Source of the DNA: Zancudomyces culisetae HAW-14-8
Taxonomy: Eukaryota > Fungi > Kickxellomycota
Direction of reading: 5' to 3'
Length of the DNA: 64,000 nucleotides
Assembly (NCBI GenBank): GCA_052426225.1
Contig: JBNJNM010000011.1
Location: forward strand, 2,356,001-2,420,000
Part shown: piece by piece, positions 1,557 through 57,300 of the stretch
How positions within the stretch are numbered: the first letter of the stretch is position 1
Layout: every line of letters begins with the position of its first letter
The notes under the pieces: model-generated
What the model saw: the letters and a program-made list of their open reading frames with translations, nothing else
Database searches by the model: none
Told to the model about the DNA's origin: nothing
Translations under genes and position numbers: made by a program

Positions 1557-2348
1557 TTAAAAGTTTACAGAGAACGAGTTATTTGAGCCTAAAGGTGCTA
1601 TGTTGCCATTATCACCTCGTTTTGCAACAACCACAGGTACTTCATCTACACCAGTGTTCTCCGGGTTTATAATATTTAGCGTGCCGAAATCAGTGGTAGT
1701 TGGTGGTAATGTCGACACAAATGATTCAGCTGGAAGAGGGGTTGATCCCGAAGTGTTATCTGTCTCTAGAGGTATTGACGTAACTATGTCCCCTTGGGTT
1801 TCTTCAGAGGCAAGCAGGACGGTATCTGCAAGTGTAGAAATCACGCTAAAACTAAAGACTGGTGATGTAGTTAAAAACACAGTATTACGTTCTGTTAACA
1901 CCCCACTAGATATTGTCTGAGTAACGAGGACAAAATTTGGTCGTCGAATTGGTACTCTTATGGTTGAAACAGTAGGAAAAGTAGTCACAGTTACTTCTTG
2001 TGATGGGGTTGGTGCTGCTATGATTGCGGCGCTGTTAGTGGTGGTCACAGTTACGGTTTGTGGTTGAGCTGGTGTTGGTGCTGTTATGGTTGCGGCGCTA
2101 TTGGTGGTGGTCACAGTTACGGTTTGTGGTTGAGCTGGGGTTGGTGCAGTTATGGTTGCGATACTGATGATGGTGGTCACAGTCACTTGTTGTGGTGGAG
2201 GACCTGGTGCAGTTATGGTTGAAATGCTGGTGATAGTAGTCACAGTTAATCCTTGTGGTTGGGCTGGTACTGCTGGTATAATTGCTGCAGTATTAGTAGT
2301 AGTCACTGTCACTGTTTGTGGTTGGACTGGTGCTGCTGCTGGAACTGG

Positions 2349-2386
<38 letters not shown>

Positions 2387-3431
2387 GTATAATTGCGGCA
2401 CTATTAGTAGTAGTCACTGTTTGTGGTTGGACTGGTGCTGTTGCTGGAACTGGTGCTGCTGCTGCTGGTGGTGGTATAATTGCGGCACTATTAGTAGTAG
2501 TCACTGTCACTGTTTGTGGTTGGACTGGTGCTGGTGGTGCTGGTGGTGCTGGTGGTGCTGGTGGTGCTGGTGGTGCTGGTGGTGCTGGTGGTATGGTTGT
2601 GATGCCGGGGGTGGTAGTCACAGTTACGGTTTGTGGTCGACTTGGTGCTGGTGGTGCTGGTGGTGCTGATGGTGCTGATGTTGCTGGTATGGTTGTGATG
2701 CCGGGGGTGGTAGTCATAGTTACCGTTTTCAAGGTGTATACGGATGAGATATTAACCAAGGGAATGCAAACAGCATTGTTGCTTGTAGGGAATGCATTGA
2801 GATTATCGACATTGGTTAACATAAAAACAGGGCTAGAAGACATCTGTACAATTTGTGATGCTGGCGCGGGAGCGTTTATTGGCACAGCTTGAACTACCGC
2901 TTGTGGGAGTACAGCAGTGACCGTTAAAGTGTTAATAACTGGTGTAATGCCTTGTAGTTGAACTTGTGGTTGAACTTGTATTTGAGCTTGTGGTTGAGGT
3001 TGTGTGACAATGGAAACGACTGTACTTATAACTGGTGGTATACTTTGTGTTATAGTCTCTGTAACAGTTGGTGGGGATGCAGGGTTTTGGTCAGGAGCAG
3101 TCCCTACAGGCACTTCGTTACCTAGAATCATGCTATTAGTTTCAGCCACTGGTGGAACAGGTGCGGGTGCAGGAGTTACTGTTTCGGTGGCTACCTGCCC
3201 AGCAGTAAACTCTGTGCCTCCGAATAAACTAAAAATATTCTGCTTTGTGACAACAATTGTTGTAATCTGCGTCTGCGTAGTTGAAACTGATGGTCTTATT
3301 GGGGAAGATATTGTGGTTGACTTTGTTGTGCTGACTGTCACTACTACGGTTACAGCAGCTGCTCTGAATGCAGCCAAGATGATCAGAAAGGCTATACATA
3401 TGCATTTAATCATCTTTATGTTTGCTTGCAA
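1557..3431 (-). CDS. Secreted Thr/Pro/Ala/Val-rich tandem-repeat protein (mucin/adhesin-like cell-surface protein), 624 aa
   Basis: Single ORF with signal-peptide-like N-terminus (MIKCICIAFLIILAAFRAAA), about 8-10 repeats of (P)QPQTVTVTTT(N/P)SAAII, and (PPA)n and poly-A tracts. No recognisable catalytic domain. Confidence 0.8.
2349..2381. repeat. (TGC)11 microsatellite encoding poly-Ala in the mucin-like gene
   Basis: Read directly; matches PPAAAAAAAAAAAP in the minus-strand protein. Confidence 0.9.
2526..2592. repeat. 9-bp tandem repeat (TGGTGCTGG) x~7 encoding (PPA)n
   Basis: Read directly. Confidence 0.9.
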
Positions 3432-4850
3432 TTAATTTCTTCTAGTTGGGTTTTATGGTAATTTCTTATATTTATCCGTATTCATGTATTTGTTCTCGGT
3501 TTTTGAGATTTTTATATTTTGGGTTGTTTTTTATGGTTATATTGCTTATGTTTGTATAAATAATGATCTAACTATGCGCGAATATTGCATATTAATTTTA
3601 AAGAGAAATATTCTGATATCGGACGGTGGTAAAGGACTGCAAATAAATAACATTTGACATTAAACGCAAAGTTATGCACCCATACATTATTTAGTTGTTA
3701 GCATTATAAAGACATGCACCTTTGTGGATTTACAATAATTAAGAGCTTAATACTTCATTAGGTAAACCAACTTTTAGTTTTTCTGGGGGAGGTCTTGCTG
3801 ATTGTACACTTGATGAAAGAAAAAGTATTAAACTAAATTTATGTTTCACTAGCAGCTGTCTACAACCAATATATGGAGTGGTTTGTTTTTACTACTCTAC
3901 CATCATTTTTAAAGCCAGAAACATAATTTTTTATTGGATTTGCCTGAAATAACAATCCGAAACACCAATTTTGAATGTCTCGGTGAAATTGAGATTTAAT
4001 ATCACTTATTTTATTAAAGATGGCACACATGCTTTTGAAGCAAATGAGCGGTGGTGCCCTGCTAAGCCCTATAATTTATTGTTACTCTTATTGGCATTGG
4101 CTTGAGAAACTACAACTATAAATCTAAGTTTAGAAAGGTGTGTATAATACGATTTCTTTAGGCACAAAGTTGTGTTGAAAAGTTCAAGAATTCTCTGCAT
4201 GCTACATACCGTATACTGGCCCATTATACTTTATATTCATTGGTACAAGTGTACTGTAAAACTCGGCTGTGTATTCACAATAATACGCACATAGGTATAT
4301 TTTTTAATCTTTTTGAAACACACTGTTGAGTCTAAAAGAACCTTATACATCCAGATGTATAATCATAGCTGGTCTAGCTAGGGGGGAGGGAGCGTCGGGA
4401 TTCCGTTCGAGTTCATACAGCTAGGTACAAGCGGCAGAATCACAAATAGATGTACAATTTAGCTAGCAATCGACAATATAGAAAGCTGGTGCAATATAGA
4501 TCGCCAGTAGTAACATTACTACTTGGTACCTGTATACTAACTTTTAGCTTGTTGAATCCTACATTGCTCTTTTTTCTCTGCAACTTTAGCTCGTTTTACC
4601 ACATATTCCGTTTATTTTTGGCCCAAATAAAATCAGAGTTTTTATTTTTTGAAAAATTCTATGACGAATATAATTGGGCGTGTAGATAAAAGAAACTAGC
4701 ATTTTGTGCTCTATGAACAGATGAAAAAAAAATAATAAACAAAAAAAATATCAAAAGGGGGGATAATATTGAAGATAATACTTTTTTGAAATAAAACTAG
4801 AATTTAGCTTCGAATTTTTCGTTAAAAATCTTCAACTTATTTTAGAAAAC

Positions 4851-5849
4851 ATGTATATCGCGAAGAGATTGACAGCCATAAGAAATAGCGCCCTGCTGGT
4901 TTCTAGATTCTCCACAACCAAATTAAGATCAAGTGATCATGTTTTTGTGGTAAGTAATTCTTGGTCGTAATTGTGAAGTAAAAGTAATTAAAATGTCAGT
5001 TACACGACTACTTATAAATAAATATATTACTAGCATCGTGACACACCAATCAATAACGAAAATGTAAAATTCGAGTTCGATAAAAAGAACCTTCCAGAGG
5101 TTCAAAAGATTCTAGCCAAATACCCAGAAAATTATAAAAAGGGTGCAATAATTCCGTTGCTCCATTTGGCACAAAAGCAACACGGCTGGACCTCTCTAGG
5201 TGTTATGAATCATGTTGCAGGAATCGTTGATGTCCCACCTATGCGGGTATATGAAGTTGCGACATTCTACACTATGTTTAATAGGTTTGTCTTTTTCTTC
5301 AAATCTCACCTTTTCTGTCTCTGGCGCATTTTTGAAGATGAATGTTATAATTTTTTGTTTTTATGAAATAGAGAGCCAGTAGGAAAATATTTTTTGCAGG
5401 TATGTGGAACAACACCATGCCAATTGTGCGGTTCAGACAACATCTTTAAGACGGTTGAAAAACATCTCGGTATAAAGAAAGGCGAAACTACAAAAGACAA
5501 GCTATTCACTTTGGTGGAGGTGGAATGTGCTGGTGCATGTGTAAATGCACCTGTAATGGCTATCAACGACGATTACTATGTAATGCTCCACTCAAATTCA
5601 AATGATTTTATAAAGGTTTTTGTTTTTTTATTTTCTTGCACCCATAGTTATTACAACTACATAATTTTATAACATTAGGAGGATTTGACACCAGAACTTA
5701 CTGTAAAGGTTTTGGATTCATTCAAGTCAGGAAAACCACTCCCACCAGGTCCCCAGGGTACTAGAAGAACATGCGAGCCAGCAGGAGGCCTAACAACATT
5801 GAAATCGGAACCTCCTGGTCCAGGATTCATGGTTAGAAGTGACCTATAA
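4851..5849 (+). CDS. NDUFV2: NADH:ubiquinone oxidoreductase 24-kDa (2Fe-2S) subunit, mitochondrial; exons 4851-4949, 5034-5284, 5372-5579, 5679-5849
   Basis: Spliced by hand via GT-AG introns: Arg/Ser-rich presequence, then VFV|[56 protein letters not shown] and [11 protein letters not shown] (2Fe-2S ligands), ending [10 protein letters not shown]. Confidence 0.96.
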
Positions 5850-6720: not shown

Positions 6721-7311
6721 AAACAGAAACAGAAACTAAAACAAAAACAAAAACAAAAGTGGACTTCAATCCAATATGCACCTTCAGATCATGGTATGCT
6801 TTGCATCCATTTATTAATTTATGATAATATTCCAACTAACCACAGCCTTTTGTATTGTTGTGAGAAAAATAGTAGCAAAAAAATTATCAATGGCTCTCAT
6901 CAGGAAAAGCGCACAGCTAAACGTCGCTGCATCTAGAAAGTATGGGTCAGAATCGAGTGAGAATAGATCATACAACGCACGCCGACTCCAACAGAATACA
7001 GCATTCAGTTTTGGTTCTGGAAAGCGTACCAGATCCTTGGATTATGGAATTTGCAAAAACAAGGTTTTGCTTTATGCACAGAAACATGTCGATAAAGTCA
7101 CGGAGTCTATACTACAGGCTGTAGTGTTTAATACCCAAGGCCACCTTAGCGCAACAATTGTCGAAAATAACCCAAAGCTATTGATAAAACTTATTTATGA
7201 CGCGGTTAAAGATGTATTTATTTCTTCAACTTGTCTTCATGGTAAGGCTGGTCTCTTTTTAAAAAATAAAAACAAAAAAGTTCGGATTTAGAGCATAGCC
7301 ATAAAACCCAA

Positions 7312-7327
7312 CCCCCCCCCCCCCCCC
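7312..7327. repeat. C16 homopolymer run
   Basis: Read directly; stands out in an AT-rich background. Confidence 0.9.
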
Positions 7328-8160
7328 ACACAAGTCATGTTGTTCTTCTGAACTGGGCTAGCGCTGGTGGAATAAAATGTTATTTCGGAAAAGCATCTGC
7401 GAACTCTGACCTCCATTTCTTATGTCACTTATTTCTGGCCTGTGTGAACGATACTATTGCAAGTAGCTAACAAAATGTATCACCACACACCTGACACTAT
7501 CTGATTTACATTCACCAGAAATAAAATAGGCGAATACCTAATATCTTGTGTACTGAAAAGGTTTGTTTGTGCTTTCAAGCAATGTGGGAATTTTCGAACA
7601 TAACCAATGTTTTAGCTTACTAATCAGCAAATGCTAAGCATGAACCATAAAATCAGTTAGCGGCTATTTTTTAATCCCCTCAAAAGTTGGTCAATAAAAC
7701 AATGGCATGTTCAAAAATAAATGAGATAAAAAACGAAAATAATACGAATTTTCAGTTAGCCTGTAATGCTATTGGGCGGTTTCTGGAAAGGGATAAACAT
7801 GATGGCGTTTCATTGCTTCTTCAGCCCTTTTGTTAAATTGTTTTTAGAACATTTCTTTTTCCGTGATTTTTTGTTAATTTTGCCAATTTAAGACGAATAG
7901 GTGTAATGGAAATGATTATTAATTGACGGAGTTATGGAGAACCGAAACAAAAGCAAATTGAAAAAAAAAGAATGCAAAAGAAAATGCAAAGAGGGTAGAT
8001 AATGACAACAAAAAGAACAACAACAATAATGAAAAAAAGCATATATAGCTCCCTTTGGACTGTATCGTATCAGAATTTATCTCCAGTAGTAACATCAAAC
8101 TCGATTGCAAGAAAAAAAAACAAAAAAAGAAGCCAAAGCAGAATCCTATTATTGTAAACC

Positions 8161-9339
8161 ATGGAAAGTGTAAATAGAAATTTTTCGCCCGAGAAACAGG
8201 GACTCTCGACTGTAGCTGTCCACGTCGGATCAGAACCAGATCCCAGCACTGGGGCTGTTATTCCAGCTCTTTCTCTATCCACCACATACAAGCAAAAGGA
8301 GCTTGGTGTGTTCAAGTACGAGTACTCTCGGAGTAACAATCCTAACCGGGAAAACTTCGAAAAATGTATTGCAGCAATGGAGAGAGGAAAACATGGGTTT
8401 GCTTATGCCTCAGGATCTGCTGCTACTGCAAACATCATAGCTTCTCTGGAAAAAGGTTCACACGTGATTAGTATAAATGATGTTTATGGAGGAACGTATA
8501 GATACTTTACAAAGATATGCCCACAGTTTGACATTGACTCTGAATTTATTGAGCTGGTTGATCCAGAGGCATTGAAGGCAAAGCTTAGAAAAAATACAAA
8601 ACTTGTGTGGATTGAATCGCCGACAAATCCAACACTAAGGGTGACAGATATCAAGCGTATTTCAGAAATTGCACACGAGTATGGTGTAAAAGTGGTTGTG
8701 GACAACACTTTTATGTCTCCTGCCTTTCAAACACCATTGGAACTAGGTGCTGATATTGTAGTACACTCGGTCACGAAATACATCAACGGACACTCTGATG
8801 TAGTGATGGGCGTTGCTGTAACAAGTTGTGATATTATTGCTGAAAAGCTTAGGTTTTTGCAAAACTCTATAGGTGCAGTCCCAAGTCCGTTCGACTGTTA
8901 TCAAGCTCATCGTGGTCTCAAAACCCTGGTTTTACGGATGAAACAACACGAAAAGAACGCACTCGCTATTGCCAATGTACTTGCGAAATCTCCTTATGTT
9001 GAGTCTGTCAATTATCCTGGACTACCATCACATCCACAGCACGAACTTTCTAAACGTCAGATGCGTGGATTCGGTGGTATGCTCTCCTTTTATATTAAGG
9101 GTGATGTAAACACCTCAAAAAAGTTTTTGCATAGTACTAAATACTTTGCCCTTGCTGAGAGTCTTGGTGGAGTGGAGAGTTTGGCAGAGCTACCAAGTCT
9201 GATGACACATGGATCGGTCAGTGCTGAGGATCGCCAAAAACTTGGGATAACAGACACACTCATTCGCATGTCTTGTGGAATTGAGGATACCGAGGATCTT
9301 ATTGAGGATGTACTACAAGCTCTTGAAAATTCTCAATAA
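8161..9339 (+). CDS. CYS3: Cystathionine gamma-lyase (Cys/Met metabolism PLP-dependent enzyme), 392 aa
   Basis: YEYSRSNNPNR, DVYGGT, WIESPTNP, VDNTF, HSVTKYINGHSDV (PLP lysine), AESLGGVESL, MTH motifs. Confidence 0.96.
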   Translation: MESVNRNFSPEKQGLSTVAVHVGSEPDPSTGAVIPALSLSTTYKQKELGVFKYEYSRSNNPNRENFEKCIAAMERGKHGFAYASGSAATANIIASLEKGSHVISINDVYGGTYRYFTKICPQFDIDSEFIELVDPEALKAKLRKNTKLVWIESPTNPTLRVTDIKRISEIAHEYGVKVVVDNTFMSPAFQTPLELGADIVVHSVTKYINGHSDVVMGVAVTSCDIIAEKLRFLQNSIGAVPSPFDCYQAHRGLKTLVLRMKQHEKNALAIANVLAKSPYVESVNYPGLPSHPQHELSKRQMRGFGGMLSFYIKGDVNTSKKFLHSTKYFALAESLGGVESLAELPSLMTHGSVSAEDRQKLGITDTLIRMSCGIEDTEDLIEDVLQALENSQ

Positions 9340-12300
9340 TTGGTTAGCAAATTTAAATTATTTATCTTTTCCTTATTTTATGTGATATTAGCTGTAATAA
9401 ACCATGCTGACTTTATGAACTGACTTTTTGCAACTAGCGTATATATGAAATGCACACGCCCCAAGTATCTCGGTTCGACCACTACTCTACTCTCTCTGGT
9501 GGCAATATCCTGCTAAAAACGACAAATGCGTTTGTGGTTGGTTGTTGTTTTTTGTCACTCCCTTGGACCAGACCTGGGAGCTGGTCATACTGAAATAAAT
9601 TATGAGTTGTACCCATTATCTGTAAATGAAAAAAAGTATCTATATACATTTATTAGAAACTACTTGTCTACTAGGGGCTACGAAACGCCGTCTGTTATTT
9701 TGTCGATATTACTTAAAATTTACACTAAAAACGAATAAACAGGTTTTGTGCCTCTAAGTTCATTTTTTAAAAAAAAGAGATTAACTGTTTGCCCTCTCTC
9801 TCCCCCTACCCTACATGTATTTGCAATTGTACAATGATTGATCCTCCTCCTTTTCTCCGTCAAAGACAATGTATGGGTAGTCTCGTTCTCTAGAGTTTTT
9901 ATAGTATAAATGTACAACGCTTCCAACAGCTGAAATATCTAACTCTGGTTTTGGTTTGATCATAGCAAAAAAAAGAAACACAACATAGCATATACTATAT
10001 TTTAGCCTTTGTATCGCTGAGAGATAGCTACAAGATGATGATCGTGCTTTCTAAGTTTGACTTCTCTTATTTGTAGAAAAGAACTCGATTCTAACTGTCA
10101 ACTCTTATGCAAGAGCAGTGGATTACTAAAATAAAAAGCTTTGTAAGTGTAAAATTCCAGCTAGTTCCTTTTGTATTAAAAATTGTATCGATAAATATTA
10201 TGTGTGCAGCTCCTTAACTGTTAATCGTGTTTAGCACTTGTTCGCATCGCTTTGATTGCGAATAACTTGAATGTTTTTACTTTCTTTTTGGCACTATATG
10301 AAAAAACAGGTATACTATATTAGCATAATTAGCTCATCAACAAAATATCAAATTAAATTAGCTCAAATGACTCTTGTATACTAAGAGACACCATACACTT
10401 GCTTGAAGGCAAAATAATTCATTGTGACGTCGGTCTTGTTCTACGCAAGTTACAGAACACGCTGCTCCTAGTAATATCTGAATATTCTGGTGCTTACCTT
10501 TTTATTTTATTTCGATGCAGTGAATCGAATGGTATACTAATGCTAATAAATATGCTATTTTCAAACAAATGCACTAAATGACTCAAATAAACTCTACAGT
10601 AATCGTGATTAAAAAAATTAAGGTGACAAATGTCAGGTACATAAATAAACTCTCCGCTTCGCTCTTACGAATTCTAGGCTGGAATCTGACGCAATGATTA
10701 AGTACGAATATAGTAATGTCCGTTTATGCATAATGTCACCAATTAATAGTAATAGCGAGACAAGGTATTAGCTTGAATATTGGATATGTTATTATTTGGT
10801 GCACTCAACACCACATTTATTCCGCAGGCATTTTATTTTCTTTGAAGATAACAAGGGTAGCCAGAAATTGTGATTAATGACATACATGCAAAAATCGCAT
10901 TGGCTACCTTTAGAAAAGCTGATATCTACTGTCAATCCGTAAATGCGGGGCATCTTACATGAGCTGTTCAGTTTCTCTTTTTTTTTTGGTTCAACATGCG
11001 TGAGTTGGTTTGTGTTTTTCAATTTTAGGTTTTTCGAGTTACACTGGATGTATTCAGGTAACTAAGCAAAAAAAGAGGATGTATTTACCAAATGACCGCA
11101 TCTACTGATTAAATTACGCAACTGAAACGCGATTTGCCGGTCGAATAACAAAGTTTTTTTTCGATTTACAAACGAAACATTGGAAGTGTTTGAAAGGGAT
11201 TCAACTCTAGCTACTATTTTCCGCTTTGAAAAGTCAGGATATATTAACACCTAGCCAGTTAAGAGCGGTCTCACTAGAAACAGCTAAGGGTAAGGTGTGA
11301 ATAATATATTTATACTTTTAACCATCTCACTATCACTATCACTCCCCCCTTTCTTTTCACCAGAGAAGTCTTGCACTGTATTTCGAAGCTTGTAGTATGA
11401 TGGAATAGCAAATGGATAGAGAGCACGAGACAAAATGGCAAATTTTTTATGTACTAGAATTATATCACTTTGCCATTACTCTAGCCCTCTGGCCTGTGTT
11501 TTTCTTGAATATTACGCTTTGGATATTCAAATTACAAAGTCAGAGCAATGCATTACGTTAGTGCAGCTAGTTTGCTTGACATAAAAGATACTTGGAGTAT
11601 TTGTGATATGCTGCAAAAGTCCTTTACAAAAAAAATTTCCCGTCATTAAATGTGTTGCAGTGTAATGAATAATCAGTTGACCCTCCAGGTCGTAGCGAAC
11701 AATGACCACATTACATCTTTTATTTGCATGAGGTGCTAGAATGGGAAATCACGAAATTTATGACATTATCTTGTAAGTAGTGAGGATGACAAATACATGT
11801 TCCAGAAGTCAGGATTGGCTATGCATATAGAACATGCGATAAGAAAAGTTTTTTCTACCAACGGATCACTTTTATCATTGGCTCTTCTGATGTCCGTGTA
11901 TTGGGTACATATGGATTAAAATGATATATTATCTGGGCTTTTGTAATTAATACAAACATTTAATCTCAGTACTAAATCTATTCTGAAAAATTAGTGGTAA
12001 ACATTTTTTTGTTACCTTATTACAGACGATCCTAATGGCTTTCCTGGAAAAACTCTGTTTTCACATATCCGAAACATACGTTTAACTAACGAAATAAGTA
12101 TACCTTAGTGCAACATGGGATGAAATCCAGATAGTAACAGTATAGCTGTGTTTTATATTGCTATTTTTATTTTGAACTGGTAGGTTTGAAGTTCAAATCG
12201 AGGTCTAAAACCCCAGTTCATTTTTTGATTAATTTTTGGTGCATGTGTCAACACAGTTTGTGATATTTTATTCATATTTTTGGGACAAAAACGTCCCGGT

Positions 12301-13544: not shown

Positions 13545-15627
13545 ATGGAGGCAGAATTGGAAAATGGCTTAGATCCAAGAGAACTGCTGCTATTTTACAA
13601 GAGGCAACAAGGTGAGGAATTCAGTCAATTTAGTATGAGATTTTCTGAACTATCAGGATTGACACTATCTAAATGCATATAGAGAAGAGCGAGGAGGAGA
13701 TCGAAAGAATAATGACACACGTGAGAAATATTGAAGGATTCCACAATGAAATTAAGCAAATGCTTTGGAAGCTAGACGAGAAAGACGAGGAAATCGAAAG
13801 GCTCAAATCTGTCCTACAAGAACATACCCAGGCATTGGTTGAGGAGCGTCAAAATAATTTTAAAGCACTTGAGGCTGTTGATAGACTTAAAGGTAAGATT
13901 ATGCATATAATTTTGATATGATTTATTTACTATCAGTATTTTATTATTCTGTGTATTGCAGTGTTACGGGTTAAAAATACATGAAAGCTGTATCATGTTA
14001 TGTGATGTAGTAAAGGTCCAGAGGAAGAGTAGGCAAGTCAAGTATTTAGTTGCAGTAAATAAAGAGTTGCAGAGAAACTTTGGAGATCAAGCTCTAGATC
14101 TTGGTCAAATATTTACTTACAAAACTAAGGTAATTCTCATTACAAAAACAGTAAAATTTGAATATTATTCATACCAAAATACAACATATTCTAAGCCTTT
14201 AAAAGACATACCCAATCAATCCGTGTTTAGAACGAAGATGATGGCTTAGCAAAAGGCAGGCTAGAGGATCCAAAAACCCAGGATTTGTTAATTGAAAACG
14301 AAACGTTAGTGTTATCAGCAGAAACACTAAAGATACAACTGGATGAACAGGTTGGTACATTATTCTTATTCATACTCTACCCAATCTTTTTTTCCCGCCT
14401 AAATGTGGTTGCTTCCATATGACTATATTAACGCCTCAATTAAATCTAGAAACGAGGATACGAGGAAATAGTAAATGGACTGAAAGACAAGATTAAGTCC
14501 ATGAGAAGTGATGAAAAATCAAAGACTCTGGCTTTAAAACAAGAGCTGGAGGAGATGACTCTAAAATATTACAACATCCAGGCCATGTATAGGGAAAATA
14601 TACGCGAAACGCTTTTGGCGAAGAAGGAATCAAGCTTGAACAGAGTCTCACTCGACGAAAATCAAACAATAATGAAATGGAAAGTACTCGAGCTGAGATC
14701 TCAGATCGATGACAAGAACCAAAAGATAAACGAATTGGAGCAGGTACTCATAAATTTATTTAATAAAAACTATATTTTACGGATGGGGGAGGTATATTCA
14801 AAGTTTAACTATCGATTTTCATGTTTGTACTAACTACCTTGTTGAACATATACTAATCAAAAAAAAAAATACTTAGGAAAAGACTACATTGATCAGCAGT
14901 AGAAATTCATCTGAAGTCAAAGACCTCGAAAAGCGTTTGCGAGATGCACGTGAAGAAATTTTTGTGTACAAGGTGAGTGAAAAGTTGTGTGTTCTGGTCA
15001 AATAACCAGCCAACAATAAGGCGAGAGGGAATATGGCAGAGTTATGGAGATATTTACACCATGTTTTTATCAGCAAGATATTAATAATTACTTGAAATTA
15101 GAACGATGCCCTAGTTAAAGAGACAAAGCTCAAACAGGCTATTTCAAGGTCAGAAGTAAAAGTTGAAAGATTAAAAAAAGAGTAAGAATACCGTCATTTA
15201 ACGAGCACATGCTTAACGATATATAAAGGGTTATATTCGCAGAGCCAGGACAGAAGTATAACTATTCATTATATATTTTATAGAGCAGAGGAACTCCGGG
15301 GAAGAGCAGAGTTTGATTTAAATAGCATCTTTGCGGAGCTCGTCGAGATCAAAAGGCTAATTTTTTCAGCATTCCAGATCCTTGGACTTTTGAGAACAGG
15401 GGATCATGAGTACACCGAAACCGAAATCCTTGGTGATTCTTTAGAGCTGAGTAAGTCCTCTTTTTTTTAAGATTGTCTTTTTATCAGGTTCAAATGATTA
15501 AAATGCTTCTAGACATTGACATCGACTATATTTGCCGCAACATCAAATAGTACAATCAACGGACCTTAGAATTGACGATCTGATGGTGTTCCTGCAAAGG
15601 GTTAAGAAGAATTATTCATCCGAATAG
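13545..15627 (+). CDS. Coiled-coil protein, CCDC77-like; predicted exons 13545-13611, 13683-13892, 14011-14129, 14231-14350, 14450-14743, 14877-14972, 15102-15181, 15284-15450, 15551-15627
   Basis: Eight GT-AG introns give one open frame: MEAELENGLDPRELLLFYKRQQEKSEEEI...DEKDEEIERLKSVLQEHTQALVEERQNNFKALEAVDRLKVKVQRKSRQVKYLVA...ENETLVLSAETLKIQLDEQKRGYEEIVNGL... These blocks are colinear with recalled CCDC77 motifs. The last exon choice is least certain. Confidence 0.75.
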
Positions 15628-15717: not shown

Positions 15718-17136
15718 TTATTGGGAAAGCATCAACAGGGTGTCATTGTCAGGAACAACCTTACTTTCCAACAAAAGCTTAACAATGTTATATTGTTTAT
15801 TTAAACACGCAATTCGTAGTATTCTGCTGTCGAGTTTTGCTCCGTGGTTGATCAGCAACGTCATTATCTTGTAATGTCCATTCTTCGCGGCTAACAAGCT
15901 TGGTAGACAGTCATTCACGTTTACATCTGCATTGTAGTAGAGTAAGAGCAAAGTTGATACGTAATCCCCATTCATTACCGACTTGATCAGCGGAAGCCCC
16001 TTATGACTATTAGGGTTAAATCCGAGCTGGAGCAGCTTGGCCAAAAGAAGGTGTCTTTTCACGACCTGATAGCTTTTTTGTTCCGGCGAGATTGTATTAG
16101 AACATGCCTGTGCGTGTTTATAGCATACATCGCAATTATAGATATTCAAATTATCCCTTTTCGCTACGCTGTGGTTTTCTTGAACATCTCCCCCAAAATA
16201 ATGAATATATCCTTCATTTCCCTCTATAACCAAAAATAAGTTACTGTCTTTGTCGGGTATTGATATTTTGCTGCTCACGTTCGTGCTGCCTCTAAGTTGA
16301 GACCGAAACAAGTCATCTCTACTATCTAATTTTGCTTCACCAGCCCTTCCCCTTTTTTGGCTTTTCGATTTTATTGTTTTATCAGTTTTTGAAAACAAAA
16401 TGGCTTCATCTAGCTCAGAACTGCCTTTTCCATTTGTAACCTCTGAAAAGTTTTGTTCAACGTAGCCCTTCCTTTTGTGCCCAAAACGTACCACTGTTTC
16501 TTTTCTCACAAGCAGGGGGTCAACTTGACCGTAGTATAAAGCTTCACTGCTTTTATGCTCGCTTTTCTGGGCTGTTCTATTGAGTTTTCTAGATTCGTTG
16601 TGTATGCCATTTGTGTCAACAATGGTACCGTTTAGGAGGGAGTAGTAAACCTCTGCCTGCCATTTCTTTCTATGTAGTGCCGTATACTTGGTTTTTTCCA
16701 GATATTCAGTTATTGGCTCAAACAACCACAATGGTAGCTTAAGCTTTGGATAAGCCTTTCTTGCACCATTACATCCTATCCCCTTAAGTAGATCATTAGC
16801 TTCCAATTCGCATCCCTCCTCTGTGATCTTGGATATTGTTTTGTCTAAAAACTCCCGTCTGTTGTGACTAGCTATAGCACTGTTCTTCCAATTCAATCCC
16901 TCCTCTAAAAAATATTCTATGAATTCTGCAGTCGCATTTCTGTTCAAGACCATTTTTTTTAATCCTTCTTTTCTGTTTCCCTTGTACTTGTGTACAATAT
17001 ACCATTTCTTTGTAAATTTTGAGGGTAAGCTGAAATATAGATAGTATCTCTTGCTAAGAACAGCTAATTCTGGATTTTCTGCCAAGACGAATATCCGTTC
17101 CACTATTGAAAACGGCAATGAAAGTAAATCTATCAT
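15718..17136 (-). CDS. Protein with N-terminal F-box-like motif and C-terminal ankyrin repeats, 472 aa
   Basis: N-term LLSLPFSIVERIFVLAENPELAVLSKRYY; C-term ankyrin repeats (LLLYYNADVN, LLAAKNGHYKIMTLLINHGA, IACLNKQYNIVKLLLE). Confidence 0.85.
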   Translation of the reverse strand: MIDLLSLPFSIVERIFVLAENPELAVLSKRYYLYFSLPSKFTKKWYIVHKYKGNRKEGLKKMVLNRNATAEFIEYFLEEGLNWKNSAIASHNRREFLDKTISKITEEGCELEANDLLKGIGCNGARKAYPKLKLPLWLFEPITEYLEKTKYTALHRKKWQAEVYYSLLNGTIVDTNGIHNESRKLNRTAQKSEHKSSEALYYGQVDPLLVRKETVVRFGHKRKGYVEQNFSEVTNGKGSSELDEAILFSKTDKTIKSKSQKRGRAGEAKLDSRDDLFRSQLRGSTNVSSKISIPDKDSNLFLVIEGNEGYIHYFGGDVQENHSVAKRDNLNIYNCDVCYKHAQACSNTISPEQKSYQVVKRHLLLAKLLQLGFNPNSHKGLPLIKSVMNGDYVSTLLLLYYNADVNVNDCLPSLLAAKNGHYKIMTLLINHGAKLDSRILRIACLNKQYNIVKLLLESKVVPDNDTLLMLSQ

Positions 17137-17748: not shown

Positions 17749-18156
17749 TTAGAGACATCCATATCTGGAGTACCAGTTGCGTCTGAAACCGATATCGCGG
17801 TTCCATCTTCTGCGGAATACAATATCAGCGTTCCATCTTGTTCTGAATGTTGGCAAAGTGGTGTAAAGGAATTCAAATCTTTGTCCATCATATACAGCTG
17901 GCTTGAAGACCAAAACTTTGGTAAAGGAAACAGCTGGGGTGGTGTTCCATGCCCAGTATCTTCCACCAATGAATACAGCTCCTGGAGAGTATGGGAAGTC
18001 GTAGTATCCTGGGTAGAATCCTCGACCGTATCTTCCGTGATGTCTGTGATGTCTGTGATGTCTGTGATGTCCGTGATGTCCATGTCCATGTCCATGTCCA
18101 CCGGCGCTGACCAATTGAGTTGCGGCCAAAAGTGCTGATACTACCAAGAGACGCAT
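17749..18156 (-). CDS. Small secreted His/Gly/Arg-rich protein with C-terminal FRxRWNxDI repeats (paralog A), 135 aa
   Basis: Signal peptide MRLLVVSALLAATQLVSA; (GH)n/(HHR)n tract; core conserved with the paralog at 19910-20362 and showing synonymous differences; TATATAAA about 120 nt upstream. Confidence 0.9.
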   Translation of the reverse strand: MRLLVVSALLAATQLVSAGGHGHGHGHHGHHRHHRHHRHHGRYGRGFYPGYYDFPYSPGAVFIGGRYWAWNTTPAVSFTKVLVFKPAVYDGQRFEFLYTTLPTFRTRWNADIVFRRRWNRDIGFRRNWYSRYGCL

Positions 18157-19909: not shown

Positions 19910-20362
19910 TTAGTAAATTTTGTAGTTTCTATACCATGAGCGTCTAAAGCTGATATCGCGGTTCCATCTTCTGCGGAATACGATGTCACCGTTCCATCTT
20001 GTTCTGAATGTTGGCAGAGTGGTGTAAAGGAATTCAAATCTTTGTCCATCATATACAGATGGTCTAAAGCTCAATGTGTTTATAAAAGCAACTGGTGGGG
20101 TGGCGTTCCATGACCAGTATCTTCCACCAATGAATACAGCTCCTGGAGAGTATGGGAAGTCGTAGTATCCTGGGTAGAATCCTCGACCGTGACCTCCACG
20201 ACCTCGGTGGCCTCCATGACGTCCGTTGTGGTTTCCGTTGTTGCTTCCATGACGTCCATGGTTTCCATTGTTGCTTCCATTGCTGTTTCCATTGCTTCCA
20301 TGTCTATCGGCGCTGACCAATTGAGTTGCGGCCAAAAGTGCTGATACTACCAAGAGACGCAT
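19910..20362 (-). CDS. Small secreted Gly/Asn/His/Arg-rich protein with FRxRWNxDI repeats (paralog B), 150 aa
   Basis: Same signal peptide and core (GRGFYPGYYDFPYSPGAVFIGGRYW...RFEFLYTTLPTFRTRWN) as paralog A; different low-complexity N-terminal tract (GSNNGNH repeats). Confidence 0.9.
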   Translation of the reverse strand: MRLLVVSALLAATQLVSADRHGSNGNSNGSNNGNHGRHGSNNGNHNGRHGGHRGRGGHGRGFYPGYYDFPYSPGAVFIGGRYWSWNATPPVAFINTLSFRPSVYDGQRFEFLYTTLPTFRTRWNGDIVFRRRWNRDISFRRSWYRNYKIY

Positions 20363-20722
20363 GTTTAAAATATGGTTTGTTTTCGTTGCTTGTTACCTGT
20401 TTAAAGAGTGGTTTGTTATTTACTAGAAAGACTAGGGATGTTGTTGTGATAATTTATTTTACTGAAGATAGCATTGGGTTTATATATGTTTTGCATTGTA
20501 AATTTTTTTAGATATATCAATATATTAGTTAAACATATACAATAGGAGGATGTGGTTATATGTCTTGTAGAATAAGCAAAATAATAAATGAATGGTACTC
20601 GAGACAATCACATTTGTCAAAATAATAGTTTAAAACGTTTGAATGGATGATATATGACGCTAGAGGTAGAAAAATGCAAGTAAAGTACACATAAAGCTAT
20701 TGTGATGATGCATCTGTAATTC
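20308..20722. repeat. Direct repeat copy 2, near-identical to 18102-18515
   Basis: By-eye alignment. Confidence 0.95.
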
Positions 20723-39058: not shown

Positions 39059-42000
39059 TTAATCTCTACTACTCAAACTTTGACAAAAATCGACCAAATC
39101 GCGATCATTCATCTTGTTAGCAACACTCGTTATTGATTGAATATGCTCACTTGTATCAGCACCATTCTTTACCAACAGTTTGATTATCTCCAAATTTTTA
39201 TGTTCGATTGCCTCCTTCAATCCATAATTCTGGTTTAGTACCAAACTAGGGTCTTTTTCAAATAAAAGTTTCAACATTTCCATATTCTTATTCTCGCAAG
39301 CCTGTATCACTCCACTTTCGCTTCCTTCCCTTATTTTTGCTCCCTTTTCAAATAATAGTTTTACCATTTCTATATTGTTACACTTGTATGCTTGGAGAAT
39401 ATAATTATATTTGCTATCCTTCAAAGAGAAAGTGTCTTTTAAAAGCAATTTAGCTGCGTCTATCTTGTTTTTTTCAACAGAAGCTTGGAGTAAGTATGAA
39501 TCACTACCAATCTCAGGACAACAAGTCAACATCAACTGCAAGGTTTTGTTGTCATCTAGATTAACATCCATTAAATAGTCTGAATTCCGGTGTATTTTTG
39601 CACCATGTCGAAGTAATAACCCAATAATCTCAACATTTTTTGCTTCAAGTGCTACACCTACAATATCCGAGTTGTCCTTAACACTTAGCCCATTTTCCAA
39701 AAGCAACTCCACCATCTCAGTGTTTCCAAATTTTACTGCAAAGTTGATCAACTTAAAACAATTATCAAGATCGATCTTATACTTTAGTAGCAACCTCAAG
39801 ATTTCAATATTGATTACTGCAACTGCCGCTTTTATTCCATTCAATAAATCGATATTCTGAATATGCTCACCATATCCAAGTAAAGTTTTAGTAATACTGT
39901 ACTCTTTGAAACGATCAGTGTTTTCATTATCAAAATGAGAAAAGTCTAGTGATTCTCCTTCATTTGTGTCTGTTTTGTCTTTTTTCTCTAACACTCCCAA
40001 ACTATCATAATACTCAAGAATCGTCTTTACTAATCCAATATTTTCAGTCATGCATGCATGTTCTAATTGATGATGGCGAACACCATCTATCACAGCATTA
40101 TTATCCAAGAGATATTTTAATGTCCTCTTGAGACCTAGTCTACATGCAATCCTAACTCCATTCCGAGTTGGGTCACTTAAATCAACTCCATTTTCTACCA
40201 AAAGTTTAACCATATCAAAGTTGCCCAGTAAACATGCCATATTGATACACTCATATTCTGGATCTTTGGGCACCACACCTCCATTCTTTATCCAGTATTT
40301 CAATACATCAACCTTATCTGATTTACAAGCCTCTTCAAACCCATCTGATCTTTCTTTTAGCTTTGCACCTTTACTGATAAAGTAATCTATCCAGTCAATA
40401 TCACCTGCTTTGTATGCTGTTTTCAAAATTAGACTGTCATGCGAATTAACATCCAGTCCATATTCTATCAATAATTTCAACATTCCAAAGTTTCGATTCA
40501 CCAGTTCTAATTTTGCTAGCTCGTAATGTCTATCATTCAAAATTTCTATATTGTTTTCGTTTCTCAACCCGTTAGTTTCGTCATTTTCAGTACCATCAAA
40601 TGTACTTTGTAATCTATTTTCAATGACATATCCAATAATTTCAACTAGCTTATCATATAAAATTCTATCAATTTCGTTGGATTCATAAGATCTTGGAAGA
40701 TCATCAAAGTATAACTCGAGTGCGTTGGCTATGTCTTTTTTTTTTGAGCTCATAAATACCATTACTCCCTCGTATAAATACAGGTTTTCACAAAACTCAT
40801 CAAAATCAAGAATATAATCGTTTTCTTCATATTCAAAATCTTCATAATCGCCATAATAATAATAATAATCATATCCATAAGAATCATATGATTGACACGC
40901 ATCATAAAACCGTAGAACTTCGATAAGACACAGCATAATTTTGTTAAATTCCAGTCTCGTTTCAACCTTAGCCTGGCTTTCTGGAATTTTGGATTTGACT
41001 TTATCTTTATCAGAAAATTCTAATAGTCGTTTTGCTATTTTACAATTTTTGATACTACACAACCCTTTAGTATCATTTTCATCTACTAGTTCAACCGGAG
41101 TACCGTTTTCCAACAATAACTGTAACATATTTATATCTTTAATATTGATCGCTATTTTTATTCCCTCAAATTCATTTGATTTTAAATCTATCCCAGATTC
41201 TATAAGTTGTTTGATAATTCTCACATGACCATTGATCATTGCTTCCTCTAAACAAGAAATACTCGCAGCATTAGGATATTTAGTGATAATATCTTTTACT
41301 AGCTCGTAGTCTTTCTTTTTTATAGCTGTTTTCAACGCATTTTCATCTAAATCTCCCTTCAGTTTATCACTATTGTTCAGAAGGGATCTAATGATATCGA
41401 GATTATCATATAAACACGCTATTGATGTCACCTTTCCAATATTTTCTGAGTTTGATTCCACTTTGAAAAAATACTCCTTCACCAAGCTCTCGTTTCTATT
41501 GTATATAGCTGCATCAAACAATATTTGTTGGTATTTGGTATCAGGGTAGTTATCCTCAAGGTATTTTATCAATTCCTTCTTATTCTGATCAATTGAATGG
41601 TATGAGCATGTAATATAAGTCAACAGCTCCATTTTGGTTTTGTATCCATATTTCTTAATAAAATAAGTTGGTATGATTGATTCCAAAATATCACTACAAC
41701 TGATATATGATTTCAATTCCTGAAATGAAAAGTTTATGTTGATATTTAAATCTAAAATACGTTTCATCGATTCAAGACTGTTCAAGTTACAGCATCTCTT
41801 CACAATACTGAGCATATAACATCTAATAGCCTTACTATCAATAAACTTAACATCAGTTACAACGGATCCTGTAAATTCTGTAGGAATCTCAATTTTACTA
41901 TCCCAACTATCTATTAACGCTTCAACATCTTCTTTCTCAAATTCTCTATTTATTTTGATTAATAATTTTTGCAGACTCGAGTGTGTAGTTATTACTGGTC

Positions 42001-42520
42001 TGGCATAAAGATTCTCAGATATGTTGATGTTAGTAAAATCTCTTTGAAATTCGTTCTCTTCTGAAAACATGTTTCCAATATCAATATCTAGATACTCACC
42101 CTCATTCATAAATAAAATATCCTTATATACAACAGTTGAAGTATTCCTATCAATGGCTACATACATTCTGAGTAATTTATTTAGCACATTCTTCCACTTG
42201 TACTTGATTGCCATCTCTAGAGCGATTTCATAGTCTATTTTTTTGATTTTTCTAAATACCAGTATTCCAATGGTTTCATTCATATTAATTCTGGTATAAT
42301 TCTCGAGTACTGTACTTATATTATACTCCAGACTAGTTTCCGTGTTAGATAAAGTGTATTTAACAATGTACTTGCTAATGGTGTCAACCTGTTGTGAGGC
42401 GTAATGCATATTTTTGTTCAAAAGTGATAGTTGAGGATTCTGAGCAAGTACAAATGCTTTTGACAGGATACTAACCGGAAGTTTGTTGAAAAGGCTGTTA
42501 CTGTTGTTTTCGGAGTTCAT
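39059..42520 (-). CDS. Large multi-ankyrin-repeat protein with N-terminal F-box-like motif, 1153 aa
   Basis: N-term LFNKLPVSILSKAFVLAQNPQLSLLNKNMHY; many ankyrin-type repeats (ACLLGNFDMVKLLVENGVDL, AVKFGNTEMVELLLENG, AIEHKNLEIIKLLVKNGAD); intronless. Confidence 0.92.
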   Translation of the reverse strand: MNSENNSNSLFNKLPVSILSKAFVLAQNPQLSLLNKNMHYASQQVDTISKYIVKYTLSNTETSLEYNISTVLENYTRINMNETIGILVFRKIKKIDYEIALEMAIKYKWKNVLNKLLRMYVAIDRNTSTVVYKDILFMNEGEYLDIDIGNMFSEENEFQRDFTNINISENLYARPVITTHSSLQKLLIKINREFEKEDVEALIDSWDSKIEIPTEFTGSVVTDVKFIDSKAIRCYMLSIVKRCCNLNSLESMKRILDLNININFSFQELKSYISCSDILESIIPTYFIKKYGYKTKMELLTYITCSYHSIDQNKKELIKYLEDNYPDTKYQQILFDAAIYNRNESLVKEYFFKVESNSENIGKVTSIACLYDNLDIIRSLLNNSDKLKGDLDENALKTAIKKKDYELVKDIITKYPNAASISCLEEAMINGHVRIIKQLIESGIDLKSNEFEGIKIAINIKDINMLQLLLENGTPVELVDENDTKGLCSIKNCKIAKRLLEFSDKDKVKSKIPESQAKVETRLEFNKIMLCLIEVLRFYDACQSYDSYGYDYYYYYGDYEDFEYEENDYILDFDEFCENLYLYEGVMVFMSSKKKDIANALELYFDDLPRSYESNEIDRILYDKLVEIIGYVIENRLQSTFDGTENDETNGLRNENNIEILNDRHYELAKLELVNRNFGMLKLLIEYGLDVNSHDSLILKTAYKAGDIDWIDYFISKGAKLKERSDGFEEACKSDKVDVLKYWIKNGGVVPKDPEYECINMACLLGNFDMVKLLVENGVDLSDPTRNGVRIACRLGLKRTLKYLLDNNAVIDGVRHHQLEHACMTENIGLVKTILEYYDSLGVLEKKDKTDTNEGESLDFSHFDNENTDRFKEYSITKTLLGYGEHIQNIDLLNGIKAAVAVINIEILRLLLKYKIDLDNCFKLINFAVKFGNTEMVELLLENGLSVKDNSDIVGVALEAKNVEIIGLLLRHGAKIHRNSDYLMDVNLDDNKTLQLMLTCCPEIGSDSYLLQASVEKNKIDAAKLLLKDTFSLKDSKYNYILQAYKCNNIEMVKLLFEKGAKIREGSESGVIQACENKNMEMLKLLFEKDPSLVLNQNYGLKEAIEHKNLEIIKLLVKNGADTSEHIQSITSVANKMNDRDLVDFCQSLSSRD

Positions 42521-44280
42521 TGTGCCTTAAGTTGAATTATTCTTATTCCTTTCCTTGAAGCTTAATTAGTTTTCTAGTAGATTCAAATACGTGTTAAAGG
42601 TGAATTTTCCCGATTAACTGAAATAGTGTTGCTTTTATACTATTTTTTCACATTAGACACATTGGTTTAAATGGTTGTTTGCTGCGTAATTTAATAAAAT
42701 CAACAAAAGATGTCTAATTATTGGATATCGTTCACGGCTAATACATCAAGCCAGAAAGCTGGATTAATTTCAGTCCAGTAATTTATGCTTTTTTGTGGAT
42801 TTCAAGATGGATTTTTAATGGATCAAAAACCACATTAAATGGGCAAAAAGTTGTTCCAGTCCATCATCTTTCACCAAGCACAAATAGGTTATTTCGTCTC
42901 TGTCGTTTTTGTTGAGTTGTTTATTGAATGGTTCAGGTTAGAGTTATATGTCTGGGTTGGAAAAATACATAAAATTTGAGCTTAGGTATGTATAGTAAAT
43001 TCGTGGTTTGAATGTGTTTGGCTGTGGTGCTATATTTCAAGTGATCAACAATCATTCAATCAGTTTAAAGAAATTATCAAAGTAACCAAATAAATTGCAG
43101 TTTTACTTCCTAATGATATTCCTACAGAATACATAAACTTTGAGTTATAAAGTTTATTAGCTTAATGAATACAACCCAGATTAAAAAGACACTAAAAAAA
43201 TGTTAAATAGTTAATAAACAATAATCCTGCCAATGTGTTGACTGAAATTTTTATAATTAACTCAGCCTCAGAGTCCCTTCAGTTGAAAGGGATATTAATA
43301 CACCTAGGACCAACAAATCACTATCTATTTTCTTATCTAGAGATATTCTAGAATAAAGAGACAACCTTACTTTTCCTCTATATGTGTATTCTTTTATTAA
43401 AGAATACCTATTTTTAGGAAAGAGAGAACGAGCCAGAATGTCTCGTACTGGAAAAATATATATGAAATAATCTTACAAAATATCTGGTGTAAGCTCTAGA
43501 GACTGTGGTTGTTTATGAATCACCAAACATATTATAGTGGAGTCCGATAAGTTGAAATTGCTAAAATTTTTGATCGAATCGGCACAGAATTGAAAAAAAA
43601 AGCTAGCTGAACCCATTAATCTAGCATAAGGGTAGGGTGAACATAGATTTGTACAGCTACTGATGAGAGTCACTATGCTTGCAAACCTCTCCTCCAACAT
43701 AGAGTAACCAAGACAGTCTAGATTGTACCCAAATATTTATACAGCTGTTATTTGTTAATTATATTTATAGTCCAAAATTATTATAATTTACTAAAAACGC
43801 TCTTGGTGATGTTGTTTGTAAAACCAGGTTTGAGTGAGAGATATACAAATCTAGAGATTAAATGACAATATATTATCCAACGCGAGTTTATCGATTTTAG
43901 TATTTTTCGTTATTATCATTTGACAGACTATTGTTGAGATCTTTTATTCTTAATGAATCAAAATCGTCACAATTTAACACTAACATATTTCAAAACATAT
44001 TAGTTATAGTACTTATTTATTTATTTCTGGAGAATAGAATAACCCTAAAACTATAATACTACACAGGTTATGGTAAAATGCAAGAGTATGCTAATAAATA
44101 ATAAACAAAAAAACATCAAGATCTCAGAGTAAAATGGTCTTGGTTTTATTACTAACTGTCTGTTCTTCTCACCAGTTACAAAAAAGTATGAGTCTGTTAA
44201 TGATATCAAATTAAAAGTAGTGATTATCCCAACTACAAATATGTACTGTGGGACATACAGTACGACTACTCCACTACTTC

Positions 44281-54350: not shown

Positions 54351-57300
54351 TTATCTCTGTTTTGCTCTTTTTAACTCTTCCATCTTCAACCCTACAGTAA
54401 GCAATCAAACTGTCATAATTTAGATCAGTTGCAATCTTAATTATTCATTCGATATGCTTACTTGTATCAGCATCATACTTTATCAAAAAAACAATCATTT
54501 TTATGTTTTTATGATTACATCATCCTTCAACCCATACTTACATTTTAGCACCAAATTTGAATCTTTTTCCAACAAAAGTTTCAACAATATCAAGTTATTA
54601 TCTCTGCATGTTTGAGTTTCCCCACTAAAATATTTTTTTTCTATTTTTGCTCCCTTTGCAAACAGTATTTTCAAAATCTCCAGGTTATTAATTTTACATG
54701 CCTGGAAGACAAAATCAAATTCACTATCCTCAAGTGTGGCTGTATCTTTCAAAAGTAGTTTAACCGCCTCTAGATTGTCTTTTTCAATGGCGATGTAAAG
54801 TAAGATTGGAGCACCACCGATCTCAGGACAACTATTCAGTATTAATTTTAATGTCTCGATATCTTCTAGATTAATACTCCTTAAAAAGCTTGAGTTGCTT
54901 TTTATTTTTGCACCACATTTCAATAACAGTTCTATCATCTCAACATTATTTGCTTCGAGTGCCACATCTAGAGCGTTAATTTCGTCATTAACATTCCATC
55001 CATTTTCGAAAAGTAATTTTATCACCTCAGTGTTTCCAGCTTGTACAGCGATTTTCAGTATTTTAGAACTATCACTGAGATTGAACTTGTAAGTTAGCAG
55101 TAACCGCAATATCTCAATATTGGCTATTGCAACTGCTGCCTTTATCCCATCTATCAAATCGCTATTTTGGATGGGTTCACTCCTTTCAAGCAAGGCTTTA
55201 GTAATCTTGTATTCTTCAAAACCATCAGCTTTTTTATTATCAAAACAGGAGTCATTTTGCGATTCAGTTTTTCTCGTTTTCGTATTTGTACAGTCTCTTT
55301 TTTTCAACACTCCCAGATCATCATAATAGTCAAGAATTATTTTTATCAACTTAACATCTTCAATTATACATGCATGTTCTAACTGATAATGAGGGACACC
55401 ATCTACCACAGCATTATTATCCAAGAGATATTTTAATGTCCTCTTGAGACCTAGTCTACATGCAATCCTAACTCCATTCCGAGTTGGGTCACTTAAATCA
55501 ACTCCATTTTCTACCAAAAGTTTAACCATATCAAAGTTGCCCAGTAAACATGCCATATTGATACACTCATATTCTGGATCTTTGGGCACCACACCTCCAT
55601 TCTTTATCCAGTATTTCAATACATCAACCTTATCTGATTTACAAGCCTCTTCAAACCCATCTGATATTCCTTTTAGCTTTGCATCTTTACTGATAAAGTA
55701 ATCTATCCAGTCAATATCACCTGCTTTGTATGCTGTTTTCAAAATTAGACTGTCATGCGAATTAACATCCAGTCCATATTCTATCAATAATTTCAGCATT
55801 TCAAAGTTTCGATTCACCAGTTCTAATTTTGCTAGCTCGTAATGTCTATCATTCAAAATTTCTATATTGTTTTCGTTTCTCAACCCGTTAGTTTCGTCTT
55901 TTTCAGTGTCGTCGGATGTTCTTTGCAAATTCTTTTTAGAAATATAATTTATAAGTTCGAGTAATTTATCATAACAATCTCGTTGGATAGCATCACATTC
56001 GAAAGTATCATTGGGGTTTCAAAAATATAATGCTCAAGTATTGGTGATATCTTTTTTTTTTGAACTCATAGTTGAAACTACCCTCTCGTACAAATCCATA
56101 TGCATAAGAAAATCGTCAAAGTCAACATGACAATCAAAATAAAAATAATTACCACCACCACCATTATCATCAACACTATCAACATAATCAACATCATCAA
56201 CATTTTCATAATTGTCATAGTCGTGATGGTCGTTTTCCAAGGAATTAATCAATTCATTTTGATAAAAACACAGGATTACTTCAATAAGACACAGCATTGT
56301 TTTACTAAATTTCAACTTCTTTTCACCCTTGACCTCTGTTTTTGAAGTTTCCGATTTAACCTTAGCCTTACCTTTTTCTATTTCAAAGAATTCTAATAAT
56401 CGCTTTGCTATTTTGTGATTTTTGATACTACACAGCTTTACTATAACATTTTTACTTACTGATCCAACTGAAACATCATTTTCCAATAACAATTGTAGCA
56501 TATCCATATCTCTATTTTCGCTTGCAATCCTTATTCCGTTAAACTCTGGTGCTTTCAAGTTCACTCCTGTTTCGATAACCAATTTGGTAGTTCTAATATC
56601 TCCAGTGCTCACCGCCTCCTCCAGGCAGGAGATACTTATTGCGTTTGGATATTTGCTGATAATATCTTGTGCCAATTCATACTCTTTCTCTTTTATAGCC
56701 GTTTTCAATGCATTTTCATCCAACTCTCCTTTCAGTTTATCACTGTTGTTTAAAATAAATCTTATGAGATCGACACTACCACTTTTGTACGCCATTTCTG
56801 TTATTTTTCTAATGTTTTCCGAGTTTAACTCAACTTTGAAAAAATATTTTTTCACCAAAATTTCATGTTCATTATAGATCGCCGAATCGAATAGTATCTG
56901 TACGTGTTTACCTTTAGAGTAATTAATTTCGAGATATGAAATAAAGCTTTCTATATCCCACTTGATTGAAAGATAGGCCAATAGTATGTAAACCAACAAC
57001 TCTTTCTTTTCTGTTTCTTCATATTCACTAATAAAAGAATGAAATCCATCACCAACTGGGTCCATCTCTTCTAATATAATCCAACATAGTGTGTCAGAAG
57101 GATCATTGAAGCTTATTTTCAGATCCAAAATTCTTTTTAGCCATTCAAGGTCTCCCAATCTACAGATTTCACATGCAGCCTCCAATATACAATATAACAA
57201 AAATTTCTCATCAACGCATGTGATATCTCTTCCAGTAGAGCTACATATATCTGGTGGAAATTCAAACCTAGTGTTGCAGATATCTATTAGAATTTCTATG

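Follow-up and report, generated by a model that had tools for sequence, protein, structure and literature searches.

Can a fungus without a flagellum keep a protein of the centriole wall, and what would that protein do there? The question is raised by a coiled-coil gene of Zancudomyces culisetae HAW-14-8, a member of the Harpellales (Kickxellomycotina, Zoopagomycota) that lives in the gut of aquatic insect larvae and for which a HiFi genome assembly has been published (PMC12611240). The gene lies in a stretch of 64,000 nucleotides from contig JBNJNM010000011.1 (positions 2,356,001 to 2,420,000), referred to here as the window, and an earlier note had proposed it as a homolog of CCDC77.

In human cells the A-C linker is made up of CCDC77, WDR67 and MIIP; it joins neighbouring triplets and anchors the CEP63 torus for duplication (PMC12290023 and its preprint), and CCDC77 is also found at satellites and distal appendages (preprint of PMC12290023). 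According to Galindo et al. 2021 (PMC8371127), the flagellum was lost once at the base of Zoopagomycota, Mucoromycota and Dikarya, and Ito et al. 2019 state that no centriole biogenesis proteins were identified in fungal genomes except those of chytrids (PMC6559791). The earlier note mentioned a ninefold ring in the spindle pole body of Coemansia, and a nine-microtubule cylinder, 68-71 nm high and 80-100 nm wide, is indeed reported for Coemansia reversa (McLaughlin et al. 2015, as cited in PMC6070874), a member of the Kickxellales and not of the Harpellales. The same review describes the molecular composition of this cylinder as unknown and the cylinder itself as possibly a degenerate centriole (PMC6070874).

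Gene structure and orthologs in the Harpellales

The candidate gene occupies positions 13545-15627 of the window on the + strand, and its nine exons encode an open reading frame of 409 residues plus a stop, with no internal stop. All eight predicted introns are GT-AG introns of 71-133 nt, in phases 1, 1, 0, 0, 0, 0, 2 and 1, and their G+C content (0.25-0.35) lies below that of the exons (0.34-0.44). A broad sequence search with exon 2 recovered OMH79979.1 from Z. culisetae (97%), PVU88947.1 from Furculomyces boomerangus and PVV04619.1 from Smittium megazygosporum, and a later search added a Smittium culicis protein as a fourth relative. The GenBank models of F. boomerangus and S. megazygosporum also have nine exons, with intron phases identical to those of the window gene. 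Six of the eight introns fall in the same alignment column as in both orthologs; the other two lie in gappy stretches, 1-12 columns apart. The nine exons, eight canonical introns and single intact reading frame read by the earlier note are confirmed in the sequence and have counterparts in two orthologs. The exons are as follows.

13545..13611, + strand: exon 1, residues 1-22; start codon and ELLxFY (equivalent of ELLxYYR in CCDC77), start of helix 1
13683..13892, + strand: exon 2, residues 23-92; central part of helix 1, carrying the conserved W, EE(I/L)xxL, LxEER and DRLK
14011..14129, + strand: exon 3, residues 93-132; helix 1 ends and the disordered linker begins here; acceptor 14010 backed by the orthologs
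14231..14350, + strand: exon 4, residues 133-172; linker and the ENETLxL...QLxEQ block that opens helix 2
14450..14743, + strand: exon 5, residues 173-270; helix 2, family motifs LLEDRR and TKDYL eroded
14877..14972, + strand: exon 6, residues 271-302; helix 2; found in both orthologs but not in the older GenBank model
15102..15181, + strand: exon 7, residues 303-329; helix 2
15284..15450, + strand: exon 8, residues 329-385; last part of helix 2, diverged but in register with the RR-x-EGF block of the family
15551..15627, + strand: exon 9, residues 385-409 and stop; short last helix; found in both orthologs but not in the older GenBank model

The GenBank entry OMH79979.1 (365 residues), annotated as hypothetical, was judged incomplete: its intron 1 donor lies later and it lacks exons 6 and 9. 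Because these two exons have counterparts in both orthologs, the nine-exon model was preferred. An alternative intron 2 acceptor at 13961 was rejected, as it runs into a stop and the orthologs favour 14010.

The gene is single-copy, with one matching locus in the Z. culisetae genome, and its downstream neighbour is syntenic in Furculomyces and Smittium:

15718..17136, - strand: ankyrin-repeat gene, convergent with the CCDC77 gene

As this neighbour is shared across three genera, it serves as a marker of orthology; it implies no functional link. Compared with the coding sequence from the 2016 assembly, the window gene carries 13 synonymous and 6 non-synonymous changes (pN/pS 0.12, p = 8e-6), and between genera dS is saturated while dN is 0.4-0.65. 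The gene is almost certainly a single, vertically inherited CCDC77 ortholog of the Harpellales, and it is kept under purifying selection. The set of readings in which it was acquired from the insect host, is a decaying relic, or serves a hidden flagellated stage is the least probable that we weighed. A host-derived ubiquitin gene is reported for Z. culisetae (PMC5026252), which gives host origin a precedent. Introns and synteny common to three genera with saturated dS argue against both transfer and relic, the low pN/pS speaks against decay, and the ciliary gene content described below speaks against a hidden flagellum.

Several observations concern the assemblies and the rest of the window. 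Between positions 13545 and 15627, the 2016 assembly (GCA_001969505.1) and the HiFi assembly differ at 47 positions in 2.1 kb; this difference of about 2% suggests separate strains or haplotypes. Two small secreted-looking proteins with the same signal peptide are encoded on the - strand at 17749-18156 and at about 19913-20392; one has a His-rich tract and the other an Asn/Gly-rich tract, and the protein at 17749-18156 has no Pfam match. Similar short N-terminal motifs mark three ankyrin-like genes on the - strand, at 15718-17136, 39062-42526 and 54504-57980, the repeats being confirmed in the first two. At 1560-3431, also on the - strand, a 624-residue secreted-looking repeat protein rich in Thr, Val and Pro has no Pfam match.

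Relationship to the CCDC77 family

We assembled a family set by scanning metagenomes with a short degenerate probe, based on a CCDC77 motif in its non-human form. All 66 loci found (66/66) encode one family and, judged by eye, come from green algae, ciliates, stramenopile-like protists and invertebrates, none being taken for human. Members of six of the nine clusters, among them a Micromonas pusilla protein, carry the JGI/IMG label "coiled-coil domain-containing protein 77", an automatic annotation. An HMM was built from 23 natural members, with the Harpellales excluded.

This profile gave the window model 44.7 bits; the three proteins from Furculomyces, S. megazygosporum and S. culicis reached 50-55.3 bits. 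The match of the window model consists of two gapless blocks of 83 and 209 columns in order, profile columns 30-112 against residues 12-94 and columns 206-414 against residues 154-362; the CCDC77-like peptide blocks that had been quoted in the earlier note are present and also in order. Exon 2 is the best single exon (17.5-20 bits), at the top of 3128 local ORFs. Heptad-position, 7-residue block and local shuffles of the window model (n=500 each) stayed at or below 3.9 bits; shuffling in 28-residue blocks, by which real pieces survive, gave up to 24 bits, and the reversed protein scored -10.8 bits. In a profile-to-profile comparison, hhalign aligned the CCDC77 and Harpellales profiles over 349 columns with a probability of 99.0% (E 4.4e-18); reversed profiles and the CEP135-like coiled coil described below gave 1-4%, and the window model alone 95.8%. 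In the reciprocal direction, a Harpellales HMM ranked CCDC77 ORFs first among 4644 ORFs, and the next-best matches were further exons of CCDC77 genes that the probe had not selected. In an Atlas feature search with the Furculomyces protein, a chordate CCDC77 cluster came third (0.95, 162/256 features), which we treat as a lead only.

Other searches were less specific. Pfam, queried with single exons and with full-length orthologs, gave only sub-threshold coiled-coil families; PDB sequence searches returned no CCDC77 chain; the Atlas search with exon 2 alone was unspecific, and fold searches with the coiled-coil model were uninformative. Word searches and the broad sequence search found Harpellales proteins only, with no bridge even to known CCDC77 and no Coemansia ortholog, and a metagenome scan with Harpellales patterns gave no match. 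A genome-wide search of Z. culisetae with the CCDC77 profile yielded no candidate and missed the window gene itself. Introns shared with distant CCDC77 genes were set aside as a line of evidence, a single green-alga-like locus with an intron at the intron-4 position being too few to count.

The unspecific Pfam, PDB, word and fold searches, together with an identity of about 19-21%, are what a Harpellales-specific coiled coil resembling CCDC77 through composition and heptad pattern would give. The failure of the heptad-preserving shuffles, the reversed profiles and the CEP135-like coiled coil, along with the recovery of CCDC77 exons outside the probe's selection and the gapless, ordered blocks, makes this explanation highly improbable. 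We therefore regard the homology of the Harpellales family to CCDC77, as proposed in the earlier note, as established.

Divergence and predicted structure

The Harpellales protein shares about 20% identity with the CCDC77 family and keeps 22 of the 68 family-conserved columns. Helix 1 retains Y, W, E, L, ER and DxLK, and helix 2 its opening LxL...QLxEQ block, whereas little remains of ALSD, LLEDRR, TKDYL and RR-x-EGF. Where the family has the acidic ELEDR stretch, the Harpellales sequence is basic; the constancy of ELEDR in the family set was forced by the metagenome probe, as was the conservation of END-x-LK..E.EDR as a whole.

In an AlphaFold2 model of the Furculomyces ortholog, a helix (residues 10-114) is followed by a low-confidence or disordered segment (114-150), a second helix (152-374) and a short last helix. 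The order of helix 1, disordered linker and helix 2 is that of the CCDC77 family, the helices being predicted and the collinearity demonstrated by alignment. Human CCDC77, the A-C linker protein (PMC12290023, PMC12704290), and the Harpellales protein thus have in common a collinear reciprocal profile match, a two-helix layout and a single gene copy. They differ in the low identity, in the erosion of ALSD, ELEDR, LLEDRR, TKDYL and RR-x-EGF, in a host without a flagellum and in a setting where WDR67, MIIP and delta/epsilon tubulin were not found by genome search.

Centriole and cilium genes in the genome

We searched the Z. culisetae genome for further genes of centrioles and cilia. A dynein heavy chain profile found one AAA_6 locus, and a search for IFT57 gave only sub-threshold coiled-coil matches. 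The single dynein heavy chain and the lack of IFT57 above cut-off indicate that there is no motile cilium, in line with the probably non-flagellated fungus of the earlier note. Neither of the outcomes that it had named beforehand as refuting, generic coiled-coil matches only or a flagellated host, occurred. The tubulin profile recovered alpha, two beta and an intron-split gamma tubulin, with no match to delta or epsilon tubulin; given this, Z. culisetae probably lacks triplet microtubules. As these proteins are highly conserved, the dynein and tubulin counts are firmer than the other genome counts. The second beta-tubulin (contig C8, 1181609-1182067, - strand) is diverged and has a long acidic tail.

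Three centriole-related genes and one further candidate were located.

C6, 2164448-2164840, - strand, and C12, 687615-688007, + strand: PLK4, equal scores at both
C8, about 1634045-1634468, - strand: SAS-4/CPAP TCP domain, two exons
C11, 1879984-1880498, - strand: stand-alone CFAP20/BUG22; its domain passes the Pfam cut-off, and the genome lacks axonemal dyneins
C11, about 1707227-1709797 (locus extract 3227-5797), - strand: CEP135-like coiled-coil ORF, 856 residues, intronless

PLK4 is present as one ORF of 712 residues with a kinase domain, a Plk4_PB2 domain over cut-off and a weak C-terminal polo box. Another near-identical pair of matches lies at C6:2072050 and C12:787171, and the two contigs may share a duplicated segment or represent a haplotig. 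The two neighbouring TCP exons match CPAP/Sas-4 chains with E values of 1e-5 and 4e-6; for the upstream exon, beta-propeller matches inflated by repeats outrank CPAP/Sas-4. The upstream part of this SAS-4-like gene looks short, with no obvious long N-terminal coiled-coil exon. Upstream of this gene, an open frame of more than 1000 residues with Tyr/Pro/Thr-rich tandem repeats occupies C8 about 1637000-1640000 on the - strand (locus extract 6990-9998). CFAP20 is an inner-junction protein. The 856-residue ORF, whose N-terminus we take to resemble CEP135, had no match in Pfam or the PDB.

SAS-6, STIL, CEP44, CEP120 and rotatin were not found in the genome search; SAS-6 and STIL were sought by Pfam or motif pattern, and these are weak negatives. 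The SAS-6 pattern gave 33 matches, equal to the control count, and none of the 32 that were read was SAS-6-like. MIIP gave no match. For WDR67/TBC1D31 the inspection covered three weak TBC loci, next to which the genome has seven strong ones, and showed no WD40-TBC gene. These three loci were rejected as WDR67, as by eye they resemble Bub2, TBC1D20 and TBC1D13. The genome negatives are weak, since the same search missed the CCDC77 gene of the window and PACT.

That failure on two expected positives leaves room for a small, nearly canonical centriole that has a true A-C linker, its missing genes having been overlooked by an insensitive search, and CFAP20 hints at more than singlets. We consider such a centriole quite improbable: the tubulin profile that found alpha, both beta and gamma tubulin found no delta or epsilon form, the inspected TBC loci have no WD40 part, and the Coemansia ring is only about 70 nm high and 80-100 nm wide.

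Possible role at the spindle pole

We propose, with a probability of roughly 0.6, that CCDC77 is a strut in a reduced ring, derived from the centriole, at the Z. culisetae spindle pole, and not a canonical A-C linker. The canonical role is unlikely as neither delta/epsilon tubulin nor WDR67 or MIIP was found. CCDC77, PLK4, the SAS-4/CPAP TCP protein, CFAP20 and the CEP135-like protein would together build a short ring of nine microtubules, probably with no C-tubule given the missing delta and epsilon tubulin. There CCDC77 might brace neighbouring singlet or doublet microtubules as a coiled-coil strut that runs along or between them, might help place the PLK4 duplication site in the manner of the human A-C linker that anchors the CEP63 torus, or might do both. 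That some two thirds of the family-conserved residues are gone would then be explained by the loss of contacts to WDR67, MIIP and the C-tubule. We infer the ring in the Harpellales, as well as the location, partners and role of CCDC77, from these data. The earlier note had spoken of a reduced, vestigial centriole module; PLK4, the SAS-4 TCP domain and CFAP20 agree with a reduced module, while "vestigial" overstates the decay because the CCDC77 gene is under purifying selection.

Known systems offer partial parallels. The proposed ring would resemble that of Coemansia and would have derived from a centriole. Coemansia reversa shares with Z. culisetae the subphylum Kickxellomycotina and the lack of a flagellum; it belongs to a different order, and no Coemansia CCDC77 was recovered in our searches. 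A literature search found no spindle-pole ultrastructure or ring on record for the Harpellales, and, over a range mostly outside subscription journals, no paper tying CCDC77 or other centriole genes to this order. Sanchytrids have reduced kinetosomes of nine singlets or doublets and have lost delta/epsilon tubulin and axonemal dyneins, but keep a pseudocilium, unlike the non-flagellated Z. culisetae (PMC8371127). The centrioles of C. elegans and Drosophila lack an A-C linker and have nine singlets or doublets; C. elegans is reported to lack CCDC77 and WDR67 (PMC12290023), whereas Z. culisetae retains CCDC77. A centriole remnant at the spindle pole of the Harpellales is plausible.

Retention of CCDC77 need not mean a role in the wall, as the human protein also resides at satellites and distal appendages. 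In the main rival reading, a true CCDC77 ortholog could have been re-used as a scaffold of the spindle-pole matrix or of a cytoplasmic granule, with no microtubule ring in the Harpellales. The strong erosion of the family motifs, the failure to find WDR67, MIIP and SAS-6 in the genome search and the additional sites of human CCDC77 all fit such re-use. It must at the same time account for the joint retention of PLK4, the SAS-4 TCP domain and CFAP20, for which one surviving structure is simpler than several separate re-uses, and we hold it to be unlikely, though worth serious consideration. Returning to the strut reading, a broader claim can be made only tentatively, and we would not bet on it at even odds: the Harpellales, long placed with the fungi that lack centrioles, may build a minimal spindle-pole centriole from PLK4, SAS-4, CEP135, CFAP20 and a re-purposed CCDC77 that links singlets in the absence of WDR67, MIIP, delta/epsilon tubulin and perhaps SAS-6; such a centriole would be a living intermediate between centrosome and spindle pole body.

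The Harpellales gene is a new, diverged member of the known CCDC77 family. A CCDC77 under selection, together with PLK4, SAS-4 and CFAP20, provides named markers to stain in a culturable, non-flagellated fungus and makes it possible to test directly how the spindle pole body replaced the centriole. The same Z. culisetae genes are candidate parts for the unexplained nine-microtubule ring of the related Coemansia. Finally, the family offers a natural reduction experiment on CCDC77, displaying the residues that survive once triplets and partners are gone.
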